NCBI GenBank assembly: GCA_003693705.1
Contig: RBZT01000855.1
Span: 62,001 to 126,000 of the forward strand
Source of the DNA: Polymyxa betae A26-41
Lineage: Eukaryota > Protista > Endomyxa: Phytomyxea
Direction: 5' to 3'
Length of the DNA: 64,000 nt
Under the pieces are notes generated by a model, which did no database searches, was not told the DNA's origin, and worked only from the letters and a program-made list of their open reading frames with translations. Positions 24,296 through 53,399 of this stretch are shown here, in pieces (positions within the stretch are counted from its first letter, which is position 1; every line of letters begins with the position of its first letter). A program made the position numbers and the translations under genes.

Positions 24296-25960
24296 ATGCG
24301 CATTAAGGCAAATCTGTTAGGCAGGGTATTACGCTTTCCGAGACGATTACCATCGTCCACGTCGTTTATGAGTCTACAAGCTCGCGCCTTAGACCCTTTA
24401 GTGGAACTTGAGCAGATTGGCAGCGCAGTGATTCCATTCGAGCGTTTCAAGGCCGATCAATATGCCATCCTAAGAGAAGCTATTGGCTCAGCTCAGGTCG
24501 TTTTGCTCGGCGAAGAGACGCACGGAACTGAAGAGTTCTATCGAATCCGTGCTGACATTTGCAAAGCGCTAATTGAGCGCGAAGGCTTCTCGGCAGTACT
24601 ATGTGAAGGTGAGGCGACTGACTTAGGGTTTTAGGGTTTATTTGACGTCTGCCCACAGCCGATTTCCCAGCGTTCTACGAGCTCAATCGGTATATCGGAG
24701 CAGCACCACTAGCCCGCTGTACACGCGGGAAATCCACGAAATCCGGTCCCAGTACGACCGAGGAAGCCATGGAGAAACTCAAAACCCGGTTCCCGGTCTG
24801 GATGTGGAGAAACGAAGCGTTCCATGAGTTCGTCGGTTGGCTGAAAGAACACAACCAGAATCGAGGACGCGAGGAGAGATCGCTTGTTCACCTGAATGGC
24901 CTCGACATCTATTCAATGTTCGAGTCAGCTGATGAAGTGATTAAGTATTTAGAGCAGGTCGATGACAATCTGGCAGCCGAGGCCAGAAAGCGTTACGAGA
25001 CGCTTGGTACGTTCCGTCCCGAGGCGGCCGACTACTGTCGAGCCATTTTTCAGGGCAAAATCTCAAGCCAGGCGCCGCAAGTCGCCTCGATGTTGGCGTC
25101 GTTGAACGCGATGAGCATGGAATTGAGCGGGATGGAAGGAGACGGCGACGAATTCTTCAACGCTGTCGAGGTAAGAACCGACGTCGGCAGCTCAGGCATT
25201 GCCTTACCAGCAGCAGAACGCTCGCGTTGTCGGCGCCGCCGAGGAGTACTATCGCAAGAGCTACATGGGCGGCAACGTGACCTGGAACATTCGTGACGAC
25301 GCCATGGTCAAGATGATCGAACACATGATCGACTTCCAAGAACGGAAATGCAAGTCGATGGGGATCTCGCAGCGCCCTCGGGTCCTGGTCTGGGCCCATA
25401 ACAGCCATGTCGGCGACGCCCTCGCCACCGAACATCATGAACGGCGCCAGTTCAACGTCGGCCGTCTGGTCCGAGCCAAGTACGGCTACGACAACTCGTT
25501 CATTGTCGGCTTCTCGACGTTTTCGGGGACGGTCCGAGCCGCTCGATCCTGGAACGGCCGCGATTATCTCATGGATCTGAACGAATCATTGCCGGGTAGT
25601 ACTGGCCATCTGTTCCATCGTGTCGCGAAACAGTTGAATATGCCGGATCTGGCAGTTGTTACGAGAACGAACAGCTCCCGGGGTTTGACGAGTGAACAGC
25701 TCGCGTGTCGTCAGGTACTGAACGCTCAACGACTGGAGAGATTCGTCGGCGTCCAGTATATCAAACGAACCGAACGTCAATCACACTATTCATACTGCAG
25801 CATTGGCGAACAGTTTGATACCATCATCCATATCGATAAGACATCAGCCGTCAAGGTGTTACAGCAATCACGATCGACGTCACCACGACCGGGTACGATC
25901 GACTATCGCAAATTTGAAAATTTCGACGAGAGCGCTGGCAGCGAGGAAGATTGCATCTAG
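24296..25960 (+). CDS. Erythromycin esterase (Ere) family protein (2 introns)
   Basis: 'VVLLGEETHGTEEFYRIRA', 'FPVWMWRN', 'GLDIYS', 'NARVVGAAEEYYR', 'WNIRD', 'VLVWAHNSHVGDA', 'QFDTIIHIDKT'. Confidence 0.9.
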
Positions 25961-31602: not shown

Positions 31603-32795
31603 CTATAGAGAATGATCGGAGTCCCAATCTTGATTGCAGACAGCTGCATTCTTTCGAAGTTTCAGCGCATGCAGAGATTCTCGTTCGAACGCGGTGATGG
31701 CTTCATCGCAATCGCCTTTGATTCGCAGCGCCTGAGCGCGATCTCTAATAGCCAGCTCGAAGTTGCCCAACTGCTCGAAACAGAACGCCCTTTCCATTAA
31801 GACACTGCAATCGTCCGGATTTAGTCGATAGGATTTGGTCAGATCGGTGATGGCATCGTCCCAGAGCTCTAACGAGATATTCGCCTTGGCTCGCATCAGA
31901 TAGGCGTCAATGCCACCGCCTCGCTCGACGGCTTCATTCGCATCTATCAACGACTCGGTTGGGCGATCATCAGCTAGCAAGACTTGGGCGCGAGCCAGGA
32001 ACGGCTCCGGGCAGCCCATTGGCGGCACCGCCGAGATCGCCTGGCCGCACGATCGGGATGCTCGTTGATGGCGACCAAACGCCGAGTGCACCACGCCTAG
32101 CTGGGCCAGCGCTAACGGGTTGCCGGGCTCCAGCTCGACGGCGGCATTGGCGTCATCGAGCGCCTCTTTAAGCTTCTTGACGTTTAAATAGACAGCAGAT
32201 CGCTTTAAACGGGCGTCTACAGATCTGGGGCGCAGCCCGAGAGCATCAGTGAGATCTCTCACAGCCTTGTCGAAATCGCTTCTGGCTTTATGAACAGAGG
32301 CCCTCCCCAACAGGACCCGAACTTTGAGATCTTCGTCGCAGTTCGCCACGGTCAGACATCTTCACACGGAAACAGTCAGCAACGAGAGCAAAACACGTAA
32401 AAGGATCCGAACTCGGTGAAATCGGCAACGGCATCGTCGATGTTTCGGATTTTGAGAAAGGCTTCAGCTCGAGAAAGGCGTGCCTGAGCGAATTTGGGGT
32501 CCAGCGTTATCGCCCTGGAAAACCAGCTGATGGCTGTATCGTACAAGGCCACATTCGGGTCCATACAAGCTCGACCATTACGATATGCAGCTCGGGCATC
32601 GACATTGGCAGTGCCGAAAAGATCGACCGAAGCTGACCCTTCCAACCCCAGCGAAGGCATCAATGTTTGCAGCCCCAGACGAAAGCGACGGCGGGCTTCG
32701 GCCAAGCCATATGCAAGCTGGTTGCTGCAGCTCGAAATCCCTTGAACCCGCTCAGCCATGCGCCGGCCATAATTAGGGCGACCTGGCGACGACAT
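31603..32795 (-). CDS. Tetratricopeptide-repeat (TPR) protein (2 exons)
   Basis: Repeated TPR units: 'AISWFSRAITLDPKFAQARLSRA', 'ALDDANAAVELEPGNPLALAQLG', 'AITDLTKSYRLNPDD'. Confidence 0.88.
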
Positions 32796-42675: not shown

Positions 42676-43093
42676 TCACTACTTAGAAGGTATTGCAAAT
42701 ACCGGTCCATCGCGGTGTGAACAGGGAGTGCTATCTAAGGATTTGCCTAAGCAGCTCTAATTTATTCATTGCTTAATCGCTACTCTTTGCATATTATCTG
42801 GAACTGACAGACCAAAAATGGGGATAGCTGAAGGACCTTTTAAACCTTAATATAATAAATTATTCGTATGGTTCCAATTAAAATCTTTCGAAAGAATTAA
42901 GTTAGGAATGTGCTTTTTGATTACTAGATCAAGCTTTCCTGCAAATTTCATCAGAAAATTCGGTTTTTTGGACGAAAAGCACGAAATTACATGAAGATGC
43001 CCTAATATAATCGTTCACGGACATGCTTGACTGCGTACGGGGTTGTCGCATCAACTATCGCTTCTAGCCAAAGATTGTCGCTTTCGTTCCGCC

Positions 43094-43678
43094 ATGGGTA
43101 AGGACTACCATACCTACTCGAAAACGGCGAACACGCCCCGTCGTCCTTTCGAAAAGGAGCGCCTGGATGCTGAATTGAAGCTGGTCGGTGAATACGGCTT
43201 GCGTAACAAGCGTGAAGTCTGGCGCGTCCAGTACACCCTGGCCAAGATCCGTAAGGCGGCTCGTGAGCTGTTGACGCTCGAGGAGAAGGATTCCCGTCGC
43301 CTGTTCGAAGGCGCTGCCCTGCTGCGTCGTCTGACCCGTCTTGGTCTGCTGTCAGAAGCTGAGCAGAAGCTCGATTTCATTCTGGCTATGACCGTCGAGC
43401 AGTTCCTTGAACGTCGACTCCAGACTAAGGTCTTTAAAGACGGTCTGGCCAAGTCCATCCACCACGCTCGTGTTCTGATCAAGGGACGCCACATCCGTGT
43501 CGGACGTCGCATCGTCAACGTCCCATCGTTCAACGTTCGTGTTGACAGCGAGAAGCACATCGACTTCGCTCTCACATCGCCATTCGGCCAAGGACGCCCA
43601 GGTCGTGTTAAGCGAAAAGCCCTGCGTGAAGGAAAGGGAGCCGGCGGCGGTTCTGATGATGATGAGGACATGTACTGA
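43094..43678 (+). CDS. RPS9: 40S ribosomal protein S9 (uS4), intronless
   Basis: '[32 protein letters not shown]...[24 protein letters not shown]...GRPGRVKRK'. Confidence 0.98.
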
Positions 43679-44204
43679 GTCGTTCGAGCCTTCGTATAAC
43701 CAAGCTTCGCAATATATAAACAGGACAGTCTTTTCTAATTCTTTACCCCTTTAGAGCATTTGGGCATGTATAGTAACTTCTGTATGGAATCAATGTTCAT
43801 AGTTAATCCAGCTTCGAACACAGGTAAAAGGCGTTTATGATCGCTTACCTGATTGATTTCTTTCACCTTTTGCTGTGTACGATAGGTACTGTAATGTAGC
43901 CAATACCACCTGTATGGGCAAATGGCGGATTACCGTCGTATGGTTGAGTACTTCTATACGTCATTCAATAGCCACACCTGGTAGCCATGTGATGAATCAC
44001 GACATGAGCGATCGAGATCTCGGTGAATCGGTGTCTGCCATAAGCAAGCCAGGCCTTGGAGGCCATGACTCAACCCTTGGATGAGCATCGCGTGTCACAT
44101 GCCCGATCTCAGTTTATATTTTATTCTGGTTTCTATTCGGTATCTGTTTATTTAATAAGCTTTTAAACTCCAAATCCACTTTTGTGCCCGTATATATATA
44201 CTAT

Positions 44205-47365: not shown

Positions 47366-48007
47366 CTGACAATATCATGGTGAAATACAAAACGAGTAAT
47401 ATGAATACAACGCTACCATTGACAATCGAGGGTGTGCTGCCCAGTCAATATCGCTTTATCACTCGGCATTACAGTGGAGTAATAGCTACAACATACCTCC
47501 TACCCATAAAGGAAACCTTTCAGCCAGCTGCCCTCGCAAAATATCTGCAAATTATTTCATAGAGGTTCGTGAGTTTTGCGAACTGCAGTCTGCCAGTCTC
47601 TATCCAGAAAATCGTGTTGTCATTCATTCAGAAGCTCGTTTATTTGCAGTTTGCATCGATTGAAGTGCAGAGTTTTCAGGTTTCTGAAATTATATGCCGG
47701 ATTTCCAGGTTTTTGCATCGACGGAGCTCATTTTCAATAAAATGCAATGCTAAAAATAGAGCGCAAGCCGCAAACGGCAAATCTGATTGGAGGGTTGCTC
47801 GTTTGTTTTCCGCATTTTTGCACTTGGATATGCTCTTAATACCAACAGTGACGGTTTTCACTTTTCGCCATGGTAATTGAGGGTAATGTTACAAGTACTA
47901 TGCAGTCATGCTGCAGCCTTTCATGTTATCAGTAGGGGCTCTCTTTTCATCTTCGAATTCGCAGCTCATCTCCTGCTGGGTTGGTTCAGCCAGACCTTGC
48001 TGTTTGG

Positions 48008-50750
48008 ATGTCGGCCGTTCGAAATTCAGAACCCCGGCAATCTCGTACTCTGCTTTCTGATTATTATGGCCTGCAACGCGCTGAGAGTCCCGGTATGGCT
48101 CAGATCGTCTGAGGATTTCAATGAACAATTTATCGGAATTATAGGACCACAGGATTCATCTTCTGACGATAAGGACGAGTTATTTGATGAGCAAGTTGAT
48201 GCGATTGCAGCATTGCCAGAGAATGCTCTCTCTGCTGACCCATTAGACCATCAAGATTTCGAATTGGGGACCTATGTTCATGATCTCATCTCAAAGAGCA
48301 CAGTTAAGTATGCAGATTCTGTATCAAAGCAGAACATTTCATTGAAATCAGTTTCAGAGAGCTCATTGAAATTGACAATACCATAACCGGAGAGATTAGG
48401 ACGCTTGACAATGATTTACAAATGCTTGTTTATGAGAACTATGCTAAGTTTATTGCTGCAACTGATATCATAAAAGAAATGCAGGTTCTATTGGTTCTTC
48501 AGCAAAATCTATTTTGTATCAACTCTATTTAGCTTAAAGTGGATAACCTATACTCTGATATGTCGAAGCTAAAGTCGACCATTGATACACTCGGTATGAC
48601 ATTACCAACATCAGCAATCTTTTCAATCACATGTTTTCTGTAGGAAATTATTATACGGCAGCTGAGCAAGTTATCGATCCACAAAGGTCCAAGATCGAAC
48701 GGCTTCTTGGACTATCTAGGCTTGTTGGCAGATTGAACTTTCTTTTCGATATGCCGGATCGCCTCAGATCTGAAATATCAAAGCAAAATTATGCAAAGGC
48801 TATCTCAATGTTTACAAGCTCATCCCAGATTCTGGAACAATATAGCTCCATAAAGTCGTTCCAGGATATTCGAAAAGAATCGGATCAAATCCTCCAAGAC
48901 TTAAAGTTGAAACTACGCTCGAAGCTACAAAGTTATGAAAATGCTAAAGCAGTTGAATTGATTTCTATTGCAACTCTTTTGTTAAGATTAGGTGAAGAAC
49001 CTTCGCTGCTTTGGCATGATATCTTAAGTACGATTGATGAATCTGATTAGCCCCCTTCTGACTTCAAAATAGGTTCTAAGCGCGACTGGTTCTTGATAAA
49101 CCTCGAAAAGGCAAAAAAAAATGATACTTCTACTGCACATTTACTGAAAAGCCTGCGAATGTGCTTTGCCGAGGAATTTGCCGAATTTGCAACCGGATTT
49201 AGAGATCTTTTTTTGCCAGCCCTACCAGGAGCTGCCTCCTCAAACGTATTGAAGCCTGTTTTTCTACGTGGTTATTTCTCTAAAACTATATTGATATTAT
49301 TTAGGAACAGCAGGTGCCGAGAACGATTCACGATGATGCTCTGGTTGCTCTTAATTCGTTCAGTCGACAGGTCCTTCTCATAGTGTTGCATCTCTTGCTG
49401 TTGATTAGAATAGGTTTTCACAATGTATCTCGAAGATGCCCGTTATACTCTTATGAAAATTGTGGAAGAACTATCATCCACCGACCTCAGTAACGATGAA
49501 CATCGTTGTCAGTTAGAAATTCTTGTCAACGAGGTTAAATCCCTTTTCGATGTGGCTGGCGCTGTCGAAAAAGCAGTACCTTCGTCACGACTCGGTACCC
49601 GTTGTAAAGAGGTCGGCGATGGTGTTATCAAGCGAACAATTGTGTCAGTGTTCACACACTGCCATCGTCATACTCTTAAGAGTGTGGTCTCCTATGTTCG
49701 CCAAACGTCGCCAACGATACCAAACTCTGACGAGTGTATCAAGCAAATCCATGAACACCTCAAATCAGCATCATTGGATGTTAGTTCAATATGCAATTAT
49801 CACCCACAAGCAGATAAATTGATTCAAGGTCTCATTGCCGGAAAATCCAATTAGTTAGTTTCTGAATCATTTCGACAGACTTGTTTTTGGATGCATTGGG
49901 AAATGTTCAGACATTGTTGCTTGGAGACAATGGAGTTGTGAATTCTGAAGCTGCCGTCCAAGTTACTGCCAACAAATTCGAAATTAGGAGGTCTCTAGCA
50001 GCTTCAGTCAAGAAAGTTTCTCCATTAATCCTCCTTCGATTATCAAAGCTCTGTGCCCCGTGCCAAGGGTTCGTTTTGCCTGAGCTGTTCGAGTATCTTG
50101 CCGGATTATTCCCGTCAGTATCTGCTTCGCCTGCCTTCAACAGAAAGTGTGCCACGCTCGTGCAACTATTCAAAGAAACTGAAAAGGCATTACTGAACGC
50201 AGCTGCTCGCCAAGCTGGAATGGATATGTCTGTGCACTTTATGGGAAGGCATGAAACCATGTCAATTGCTCCTACACGGCCAAGCGAGCGCATGTTTTCA
50301 TGGAAAAGTACAGTTCTGGAGTTCCAGCAGCATTTATCAGCAATCTACTCGCAACAAGCTATCGAATCACATTCAAAGCATCCAGTTTCGCCCGGTCGTC
50401 CTATGAGACGGAACGACATTCATCGGATGTTCGCACAGACCCATACAACCCCCATTTTTGTTAGCGTCGAGCCAAGCCTTGAATCTCTACTTCACACCGC
50501 CATCAAAATTGCATTCAAAGCTTGGGTTGAGTTTATCCGTCTCAACACTTTCACCGTTATGCAATTCCAGCAAGTCCAAATAGATGTGTTCATGGCTCGT
50601 GTTAACATACCACCTTGTCTGGGTTCAAATCGCTCAATTCTGGACTCGTTATTGAATGAAGTTATAACCAGCGCCATGGATTCATGCAATGATAGTTCTG
50701 CCGAACTTCCCCCAGATCTGGTGGAGCGTTATGGCTCCGTATCACAATAA
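48008..50750 (+). CDS. VPS51: GARP/EARP complex subunit VPS51 (multi-exon)
   Basis: 'TLLSDYYGL', 'EIRTLDNDLQMLVYENYAKFIAATDII', 'LNFLFDMPDRL', 'KAWVEFIRLNTF...QQVQIDV'. Confidence 0.92.
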
Positions 50751-51230
50751 ACTAAAAGTGATCTGTTGCGTTTGCGTCCATGCCTTCTGCTAAGGACATA
50801 CAATATAGTTTAAATGTTCAGTACAAGGTGGTGCTAGATTATCTGTTAAATAAACGAACAATGTAGCTTCCGCTATTTGAAGACACTTAGTTCGTATGGA
50901 GGAAAGTGCAAGTCGTGAATACAGTTGGGCTAACTCGTAAGGAGAATGATGAGAATATTTATAAAAGTAATCCTGATTGCAATCTCAGTACTAGATGGCT
51001 CTCCTCACGACACATCTCAACGAACTTCGACTGAGTCAAGCTAAACAATTTGGGACCAACATAACATTCCAGTTTGTCTTGAAACCAACACGCTGGACCG
51101 AACCCGACGTCAGAGTTGACGAGATGAGAACTGCCCCATGAAAACTACGAAAATTTTGTGTGACAGACGGTTATAGATGTTGTTATCGTTAAATTCCTAT
51201 TCGCTCTAGCAGACGCCCAGTTCTGCAATC

Positions 51231-52106
51231 ATGGCGGATTTAAGCAAAGGCGGTCTGGTGAAGGCTAAATCCAACTATCTCAGCGATGCGATTCGGGACG
51301 GACAGAACGCTTCCGTCATGGTCTCGTTCGCCCGACAGGACAAAGCGTTCGTCCAGATGCTGGTCACGACCCTGAAAGCGCAAGTCAGGACGATCTGGGT
51401 CGATTGGGAGGACGTCCCTCCAGTTACGTATTGCCGCCAACCGTTTTTATTTTGGTGGCCGTACCCGACCATCTGAAACCTGAACCGATTTTAGAGCAAT
51501 GATTGGCTGGACGAGATCCATCGTGCTGTCGAACGAATGGACGTCTGTCTGTTGGTGCTGAGCCCAGATTCAGTACGGACCGAGGTCGTCAGCTGGGAGA
51601 TCGAGCACGCTGTCAAGAACGGCAAACGGATCGTGCCGGTCGTCTGCCGGGACGTGGATTTCGCCGAAGTCCCGCCCGAGATCGCCAAACTTGAATGGAT
51701 CATCTTCCAGGACGGGACGGATAATATCGAAGCTGCCATGAAGCTGCTGCAGCAGGTGATCGATAACGAGCTGCATCATCTGAAGTTTCATACAGTGATC
51801 TTGAACCGGGCACTGCTATGGTCGAATAGCGATTTCGATAAATTCACGTTGCTGACCGGTGACGATCTCGATCGAGCTAAAGCCTGGCAATCAGCGTCGG
51901 CGCTGGGCAAGGAACCCAAGCCCACCGCCTTGCAGATGTCGTTCATCAATGCGTCGGCGACGATGGCGGCGACCAGACAGAGGCGAAAGGTGATCGCCTT
52001 GTTCTTCCTATTCATCCTGGTGATCGCCATCATCTTCCCATCCTGGGGCGTCTTCTTCTTCGCTCTCATCTTCGCGCATTTCTTCGTCTATTTCGCCTCC
52101 AGCTGA
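51231..52106 (+). CDS. TIR_2 domain protein with C-terminal transmembrane anchor (intron ~51423-51494)
   Basis: '[13 protein letters not shown]...[10 protein letters not shown]|[13 protein letters not shown]...LLVLSPDS...[17 protein letters not shown]'. Ends in '[41 protein letters not shown]'. Confidence 0.9.
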
Positions 52107-52426
52107 ATAAATCAACCGGTTTTTGGGAATCCGGACTAAATGCTGCGATGGTCAGGTGAGACGTCGTTCCGGGGGGCCGTTCTGGGCCAGCACGACACCG
52201 AATGTGTTTCATCCAAACCGGATTCGATTTTTGTTACTGCCTTTCGAACAACCAAACCATCAATCGGTTGACATCAAACACATGATGGCAATTTGATTAA
52301 GAAAAGTTTCGAAAAAAAAATGTTTAAAAAAGTGCACTGCGTAGCCGTTTATTGGCGCCGATCTGTCATATCGTTATCAATTAGGTTGGTGTCGTATCAG
52401 CCACGCCTCTCGGGCTGGTCGTCGTC

Positions 52427-53399
52427 ATGCAGTCGACCTTCTTCCGGGGTACATCACATGATCAGGATGCCAGGTTCGCCAACAAGAACAAACAGCTGCT
52501 GACGAAACTCAAGTTCCCGTCGACCTTCCGCGTTAAGGTTCGCGCCCCGAGCGATTTTTTCCCTGATTCTTCGGTTTTCGATTAAACGCTGCTCTGTTTA
52601 GGTTGATATGAAGAAGGTAGCATTGGAAACTATTAAACCTTGGGTGTCGCAACGAATCACTGAATTGCTTGGCATTGAAGATGACGTCGTCGTCAATCTC
52701 TGCTTCAATATGCTGGCGGGCGACAGTTCACAAGACATCGACCCTCGAGAACTGCAAATCAACCTGACCGGCTTTATGGGTCAAAACGCCAAGACGTTCG
52801 TCTCCGAGCTTTGGTCGCTGCTGATCAGCGCCCAAAAGTCGGACGGCGGCATCCCTGCCGAACTGCTCGAACGTTATGCCGCTGACCTCGCTGCCCAACA
52901 AGCTCAGTCGCCGACTCCTGCTGAACCCATTGTTGAACCGAAGCAGCGCGAGCCATTGCCGTCACGACGCTCTCCATCGCCTCGAAGGAAGAGAAGCTAT
53001 TCGCCACAAAGAAACCGACGACGACGATCGCGATCGCCAGGTCGCCGTCGATCCCGGTCGCCTCGTCGCCGTAAACGGTCGCCGCCACGCGAGCGTCGTC
53101 GTTCACGCCGAAGTCGCTCGAAGTCGCGATCAGTGGAACGACGCCGCCATCATGATGAACGGAGACGCAGGCGTCGTCATCGCCATCGTCGTTCGGCGTC
53201 GCAGTCGTCGTCATCGGCGTCGAGAGAGCGTTCGGCGTCCAGAACGAAGCATCAGGAGACGGCCGAGAAGCCTGTCGATAAGACGATGGATCCTCGAGCC
53301 GCTGAAGACGAGCTACGTATGCTGGCGCTGCGATCAATCGTCGTCAATAAGAACAAGCAGAAGGACGATAAAAGCGATGCTTCGCCGATTCAATCCTAA
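52427..53399 (+). CDS. SRRM1: PWI-domain SR-related splicing factor SRRM1/SRm160 (2 exons)
   Basis: 'FFRGTSHDQDARF...KFP|VDMKKV...IKPWVSQRITELLGIEDDVV...LQINLTGF...FVSELWSLLISAQ', followed by an RS domain. Confidence 0.93.

Follow-up and report, generated by a model that had tools for sequence, protein, structure and literature searches.

What is a bacterial-type TIR domain doing in the genome of a eukaryotic plant parasite, and how did it come to be there? The question arises from a gene on the forward strand of the window (the whole stretch of 64,000 nucleotides of Polymyxa betae DNA that was analysed). A preliminary description of this DNA had read the gene as a compact protein of about 267 aa – a TIR_2 domain with an intact catalytic Glu, a helical extension and one or two C-terminal membrane helices – and had proposed a horizontally acquired NAD+ hydrolase that serves protist immunity or cell death, or manipulates the plant host. 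In the analysis that follows exons were searched separately, trees were built from exon 2 alone, and the Spongospora orthologue stood in for the P. betae protein in the structure model. The features referred to throughout are these:

51231-51422, forward strand: exon 1 (64 aa), encoding a variable basic N-terminus, TIR strand A, helix A, strand B and the start of the BB-loop.
51423-51494, forward strand: spliceosomal intron (72 nt, phase 0, GT..AG) with an in-frame TGA.
51495-52106, forward strand: exon 2 (203 aa and the stop codon).
51495-51767, forward strand: remainder of the TIR to the end of helix E (TIR_2 profile and orthologue model).
51585-51587, forward strand: Val95, placed by alignment at position E-4, which is aromatic in cyclase TIRs (WxxxE).
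51597-51599, forward strand: Glu99, the putative catalytic residue, placed by alignment.
51771-51986, forward strand: three-helix extension with a basic patch at its end, common to bacterial relatives.
51990-52037, forward strand: membrane helix 1, its position ancestral as judged by bacterial relatives.
52038-52103, forward strand: Pro-Ser-Trp-Gly turn followed by membrane helix 2, specific to the family and more conserved than any other part.
52077-52079, forward strand: invariant His in membrane helix 2, from the family alignment.
49881-50750, forward strand: last exon of VPS51, a neighbour gene and synteny marker that is not part of the TIR system.

The reading frame of exon 1, left unspliced, terminates at a TGA at 51476, within the intron: splicing is thus required for the full protein of 267 aa (TIR_2 domain, helical extension and two-helix membrane hairpin). 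The single splice proposed earlier has indirect support from comparison. The P. brassicae orthologue carries an intron of 68 nt, also phase 0 and GT..AG, at the same codon, and the Spongospora protein CRZ06118 runs unbroken across the P. betae exon junction. We take CRZ06118 to derive from a Spongospora transcriptome. A transcriptome of Spongospora has been deposited (PMC4471660). Other in-frame splice sites are present and were rejected, since family spacing is restored by 51423-51494 alone. Positions 1-36 of the Pfam TIR_2 profile match residues 29-64 on exon 1 (E 1.4e-4) and positions 38-120 match exon 2 (E 3.6e-11; 44.1 bits, cut-off 28), so that the profile is contiguous over the junction. 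VPS51 adjoins the TIR orthologue CEP02444 (PBRA_009028) in P. brassicae too, in inverted orientation. The pair (window 47900-52106 in P. betae) is tandem in one species and convergent in the other, a local inversion. Synteny of a PPR gene between P. betae and Plasmodiophora was also considered and was unconfirmed by comparison. Since intron and synteny are conserved and the protein is under purifying selection (below), a pseudogene and a bacterial contaminant are both excluded: as read from the sequence, the P. betae gene is real and intact.

The gene is, as had been observed, richer in GC than VPS51 (GC3 0.72-0.74 versus 0.35-0.44), but as a sign of transfer the observation fails: the GC3s of native P. 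betae actin is 0.67 against 0.70-0.73 for the TIR gene, and the Plasmodiophora orthologue is the highest-GC3 gene of its own region, so that GC as a mark of recent foreign origin was rejected. Coding GC is bimodal window-wide (about 0.44-0.46 versus 0.55-0.57), with higher-GC examples at 24646-25957, 31606-32361, 43031-43734 and 51231-53399. At 52427-53399 on the forward strand lies an ordinary SRRM1-like gene with a PWI/RS domain, in which 52538-52601 is a likely intron.

The predicted model of the Spongospora orthologue (pLDDT 88) comprises a TIR, a three-helix extension and two terminal helices. Together with exon-wise Pfam searches it confirms the compact TIR_2-plus-extension protein, and with hydropathy it puts the count of C-terminal membrane helices at two, split by the Pro-Ser-Trp-Gly turn. 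The flavodoxin-like TIR fold of the model (residues 26-153) superimposes on Hydra TRR-2 with Z 17.6 (122 residues aligned, rmsd 2.9) and on the SARM1 TIR with Z 17.1 at 20% identity. The three-helix extension has no counterpart in Pfam, PDB sequences or folds (best Z 6.6); the hairpin has no Pfam match and is not homologous, as far as hhalign can tell, with the three-helix tail of the compact bacterial proteins described below (probability 0.4%). TAL-repeat matches in PDB searches were dismissed as chance. No signal peptide or N-terminal hydrophobic segment was found by hydropathy alone (exon 1 maximum 0.99). Throughout the family Pro and Gly of the turn and the His inside helix 2 are invariant, and the chain ends 18-19 residues past the turn; nearly all members have the basic patch before helix 1. 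The patch and the four-residue turn imply that the TIR and both termini lie in the protist's own cytosol, and the patch and the short chain end imply that there is no lumenal domain. In agreement with the preliminary description, the TIR is N-terminal and the family lacks an extracytoplasmic sensor, WD40 or other, beyond the membrane segment.

How widely is this architecture shared? A search with exon 2 returned 93 proteins, mostly of 255-285 aa and aligned over their full length, to which a profile search adds more: about 80 sequence clusters have equal size and architecture. We define a Rhizarian TIR-hairpin family by a length of 255-300 aa, the order TIR, extension and hairpin, the invariant Pro, Gly and His, and a position inside the clade recovered below; the P. 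betae protein agrees in size, architecture, residues and clade. Most members are unnamed environmental sequences. Named ones come from Spongospora, Plasmodiophora, Lapot gusevi, Mataza sp. (two) and Paulinella chromatophora, all of which we take to be Cercozoa or Endomyxa. Identity to the P. betae protein is 72-88% per exon for Spongospora and Plasmodiophora and 43-59% for the free-living Paulinella, Mataza and Lapot. A protein labelled Euplotes focardii (P0117, MMETSP0206) shares 85% identity with the Paulinella copy and probably stems from a cercozoan contaminant in that transcriptome. These searches turned up no member from chlorarachniophytes or foraminiferans. Environmental copies are flanked by eukaryotic genes (Ariadne, RhoGAP, CCT7), and introns at two further positions are common to several of them; the CCT7 of one such contig (L038), compared with Norrisiella, P. 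betae and opisthokonts alone, falls with the first two, a weak placement.

Some relatives depart from this plan or keep other company. One environmental eukaryote carries a tandem pair of family genes (L079:1-2129), and derivatives with two tandem TIR-extension modules and no hairpin were found in EukProt (P0146) and at L164:229-2349 (P0202), the latter with a weak PDZ match and a PLAC8 neighbour. Another environmental eukaryote with a family gene encodes an 874-aa protein with both SAM decarboxylase and ornithine/arginine decarboxylase domains (L009:7078-9702).

Selection on the family is severe. In four unsaturated environmental pairs dN/dS is 0-0.007, and for exon 2 of P. betae and P. brassicae it is about 0.13 (dN 0.166, dS 1.31); between these two parasites the TIR protein is 72-79% identical, VPS51 35-66%. 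Strong purifying selection of this kind, on a protein better conserved than its VPS51 neighbour, is as expected for a core gene and not for an arms-race receptor or effector.

Outside the family the TIR-plus-extension module occurs in 4,265 clusters at E<=1e-30, of which those inspected are multi-domain and bacterial-type: they carry WD40, FGE-sulfatase or CHASE2 domains, and frequently have several TIR modules. In the sequences P0126-P0275 as many as seven or eight such modules stand ahead of the TM helix and the WD40, FGE-sulfatase or CHASE2 domain. The 80 best GTDB loci are mainly from Chloroflexota and Cyanobacteriota, and the earlier assignment of the TIR and its extension to the TIR-WD40 type of these phyla is upheld. 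Such TIR-extension-TM-sensor proteins (Chloroflexota, Cyanobacteriota, Verrucomicrobiota and Actinomycetota; uncharacterised) resemble the P. betae protein closely: the TIR is N-terminal and carries the WVDWED motif, the Glu and Val or Ile at E-4, the same three-helix extension follows, and a TM helix comes after it; identity to exon 2 is about 42% and the TM-score 0.73-0.83. They differ in their extracytoplasmic sensor (median length 892 aa), which the P. betae family lacks, while the family adds a second helix, with the invariant Pro, Gly and His, and introns. Since a TM helix directly follows the extension in all 79 bacterial relatives long enough to judge, membrane helix 1 is ancestral, and the membrane anchor is not the eukaryotic addition for which it had been taken.

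Nor is a sensor-less form confined to eukaryotes. Two complete bacterial relatives are compact (283-284 aa), with three TM helices and no sensor: these uncharacterised proteins, from Piscinibacter sakaiensis 201-F6 and a Rhodospirillum MAG (L084:5001-5855, L085:5001-5852), match the family in size and plan but have three TM helices in place of the hairpin, and at both loci, read by eye, the neighbours are transport and regulatory genes. An Atlas cluster of 287 aa aligns to the whole orthologue model (TM-score 0.83). The hairpin form itself was found neither in a GTDB scan with family-specific patterns nor in a scan of viral contigs.

The tree and the paralogue search that had been suggested were both run. 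In the tree – unrooted, with backbone and donor left unresolved and bootstrap not fully settled – the eukaryotic family forms a single clade (100/100) among bacterial sequences, within which the three plasmodiophorids group together (100/100), set off by a long stem. The compact bacterial proteins form a separate clade (100/99) in the best tree; an AU test does not reject a topology that unites them with the eukaryotic family (p-AU 0.20). A bacterial origin of the P. betae TIR is likely, and we hold it highly probable, as the account with the fewest assumptions, that the gene passed once, anciently, from bacteria to Rhizaria – the direction being one that we infer – and was inherited vertically thereafter. 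The horizontal acquisition proposed earlier survives in this form, and not as a recent or lineage-specific event: orthologues run across Cercozoa and Endomyxa, free-living ones included. The preliminary description had itself named widespread, vertically inherited eukaryotic orthologues of the same architecture as counting against it; such orthologues were found, within Rhizaria. We think it very doubtful that the gene is instead an older eukaryotic one that other lineages have lost or that bacteria received, or an unexpressed gene model. The unrooted tree with its unresolved backbone and the unnamed hosts of most members leave room for such readings, but bacterial diversity is far larger, all named members are Rhizaria bar the Euplotes-labelled one, and shared intron, synteny and purifying selection leave no room for a pseudogene or a bacterial contaminant.

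The search of the genome (27,085,814 bases in 1,001 contigs) with protein, profile and Pfam queries detected one TIR locus, a lower bound. The link to STAND proteins drawn in the preliminary description could not be upheld: the closest relatives are of the TIR-extension-TM-sensor type, Pfam finds no STAND NTPase domain in the protein, and the genome yielded no nSTAND1 partner and no NACHT partner above cut-off (one match lies below it), introns reducing the sensitivity of both searches. A search for a ThsA-type partner gave no STALD match in the genome, with the control likewise unmatched.

Is the protein an enzyme? On alignment Glu99 coincides with the helix C Glu that is catalytic in Cat1 and with the Glu of other TIRs, so the intact Glu described earlier stands. 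It is kept in 171 of 198 eukaryotic sequences (which are partly redundant), in 60 of 81 eukaryotic clusters and in every named member checked, as well as in 80/80 bacterial relatives; in 21 of the 81 clusters it is lost while the hairpin is retained. Many members of fast-evolving clades of the family (P0055-P0074, P0155, P0277-P0292) have Gln, Ala, Asp, His or Phe in its place, with the hairpin intact. At E-4 the family has Val (160/198) and the bacterial relatives Val or Ile. Every cyclase TIR surveyed carries an aromatic at this position; when it is lost, the product shifts to ADPR (10.1101/2022.05.07.491051). Because the WxxxE tryptophan is replaced by valine, synthesis of cyclic ADPR by the P. 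betae TIR appears unlikely, and with it the role of signal generator earlier put forward. Plasmodiophorids carry Phe-Ala in box 1 in place of Tyr-Ser, and at E-3 another residue stands where the Cys is otherwise conserved. A Glu is in any case no guarantee of activity: some Glu-bearing TIRs are inactive, and only 4/29 Glu-bearing protist TIRs gave a cyclic product in a read-out that did not cover ADPR-only activity (10.64898/2026.04.20.719644).

Among characterised TIRs the closest parallel is Dictyostelium TirC, a horizontally acquired, membrane-tethered TIR that produces ADPR and nicotinamide (PMC13142454). Both are bacterial TIRs in a protist, tethered to the membrane and without the bacterial regulatory domain; TirC, however, is a recent acquisition of CAP12/Pycsar (TIR-STING-like) type whose N-terminal helix was gained in the amoeba (PMC13142454), whereas the P. 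betae TIR is TIR_2-type, ancient and C-terminally anchored, with a first helix that was inherited. Exon-wise Pfam gave no PF10137 match in it. SARM1 is likewise an ancient bacterial-type TIR in a low-copy, conserved, membrane-associated eukaryotic protein, but the P. betae protein has no ARM or SAM domain and no equivalent of W638, and belongs to another clade and lineage. Thoeris ThsB, plant TIR-NLRs and Toll-like receptors share the TIR fold and the Glu position (the ThsB_TIR profile matches weakly, at 21.5 bits); unlike them, the P. betae protein has no WxxxE Trp, NB-ARC/STAND or LRR, no partner that we could find, and a TIR N-terminal to its membrane segment. By analogy it would work most like TirC or SARM1, while belonging to neither, nor to the Thoeris, NLR or TLR families.

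Our preferred reading, to which we assign a probability of roughly 0.45, is of a membrane-tethered TIR that is silent until clustered and then hydrolyses NAD+ inside the protist's own cell. A bacterial TIR-extension-TM receptor would have passed once, anciently, to a rhizarian ancestor; its extracytoplasmic sensor would have been lost and the chain closed by a two-helix hairpin, which in P. betae would hold the TIR at the membrane, facing the cell's own cytosol. Hairpin and extension would cluster the TIR, giving assembly-gated activation, and the clustered TIR would split NAD+ into ADPR and nicotinamide, while Glu-less paralogues in other Rhizaria may serve as scaffolds or regulators. That catalysis is the main function of the protein we put at about even odds. 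A more ambitious form of the idea, which we consider unlikely, makes the family an ultra-conserved core switch of Cercozoa and Endomyxa that cleaves NAD+ at the membrane, its new His hairpin replacing the sensor and reading a membrane property (lipid, pH, curvature or damage) and its Glu-less paralogues acting as regulators. If true, this would be a TIR enzyme for housekeeping and not immunity, and a marker gene for a branch of the supergroup.

The same history could have led to a different end, in which the protein is in the main a non-catalytic scaffold or adaptor at the membrane: assembly of TIR with TIR, together with the hairpin, would organise a membrane domain or complex, with the Glu vestigial or weakly used. 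We regard this as less probable than hydrolysis, though a serious competitor. The turn and helix 2 are better conserved than the TIR (0.94 versus 0.81) and remain so in Glu-less members (0.91), the Glu has been lost repeatedly, the WxxxE Trp is absent and purifying selection is extreme; actin-like GC3 and frequent transcript-sized contigs hint, too, at high expression, which is awkward for a toxic NADase. Yet the Glu persists in most clusters and in the sole copy of the P. betae genome, and conservation of the TIR falls from 0.86 to 0.56 once it is lost, as if the site were selected.

That the protein executes antiviral or antibacterial cell death, as TirC does – infection leading to release or clustering, NAD+ depletion and death – seems to us improbable. 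The ancestry, the Glu, the tether and the TirC precedent itself (PMC13142454) favour it, and Glu-less paralogues and the tandem pair recall regulator pairs; but a single copy without a sensor, with dN/dS near zero instead of diversification, is hard to reconcile with it, matches to defence models are weak and generic (PADLOC best E 1e-8 to 1e-10; NCBIfam far under cut-offs), and the two compact bacterial relatives sit, by eye, among transport and regulatory genes. Least probable of all is the host manipulator of the preliminary description, an effector acting on plant NAD+ or TIR signalling. The gene does occur in three plant parasites, whose copies have a long stem and substitutions of their own, and bacterial plant pathogens have TIR effectors (HopAM1). 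Set against this are the missing signal peptide (by hydropathy), the integral membrane hairpin, the absent cyclase Trp, the single copy under purifying selection, the better conservation than VPS51 between parasites and the orthologues of free-living Paulinella, Mataza and Lapot.

We found no paper on this TIR family by accessions or by TIR and Cercozoa, in a search outside which most subscription journals lie; family names are absent from the text supplements, as far as these extend, of two 2026 TIR surveys, and EukProt-based atlases probably contain family sequences, unnamed. Database annotation goes no further than TIR-domain protein. It is already known that protists gain TIRs horizontally; what is new is an ancient, lineage-wide and highly conserved case with a new hairpin. 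As such it sets an ancient case beside the recent transfer of TirC, bearing on how eukaryotes tame bacterial TIR NADases, and it offers natural comparisons between Glu-plus and Glu-minus versions of the family and between sensor-bearing and sensor-less bacterial relatives. The P. betae TIR is small and directly assayable, and the compact bacterial TIR-extension-3TM proteins provide a culturable test case for the bacterial module.

For P. betae itself, the protein is on present evidence no new plant virulence factor. It has the look of a core protein of the cell, so far undescribed and common to free-living and parasitic Rhizaria, neither a recent theft nor an anti-plant weapon, and it has been kept even in a streamlined obligate parasite, as the only TIR found there. 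TIRs are usually viewed as fast-diversifying immune modules: here a bacterial-type TIR has stayed nearly unchanged across a large and ecologically dominant group of protists.
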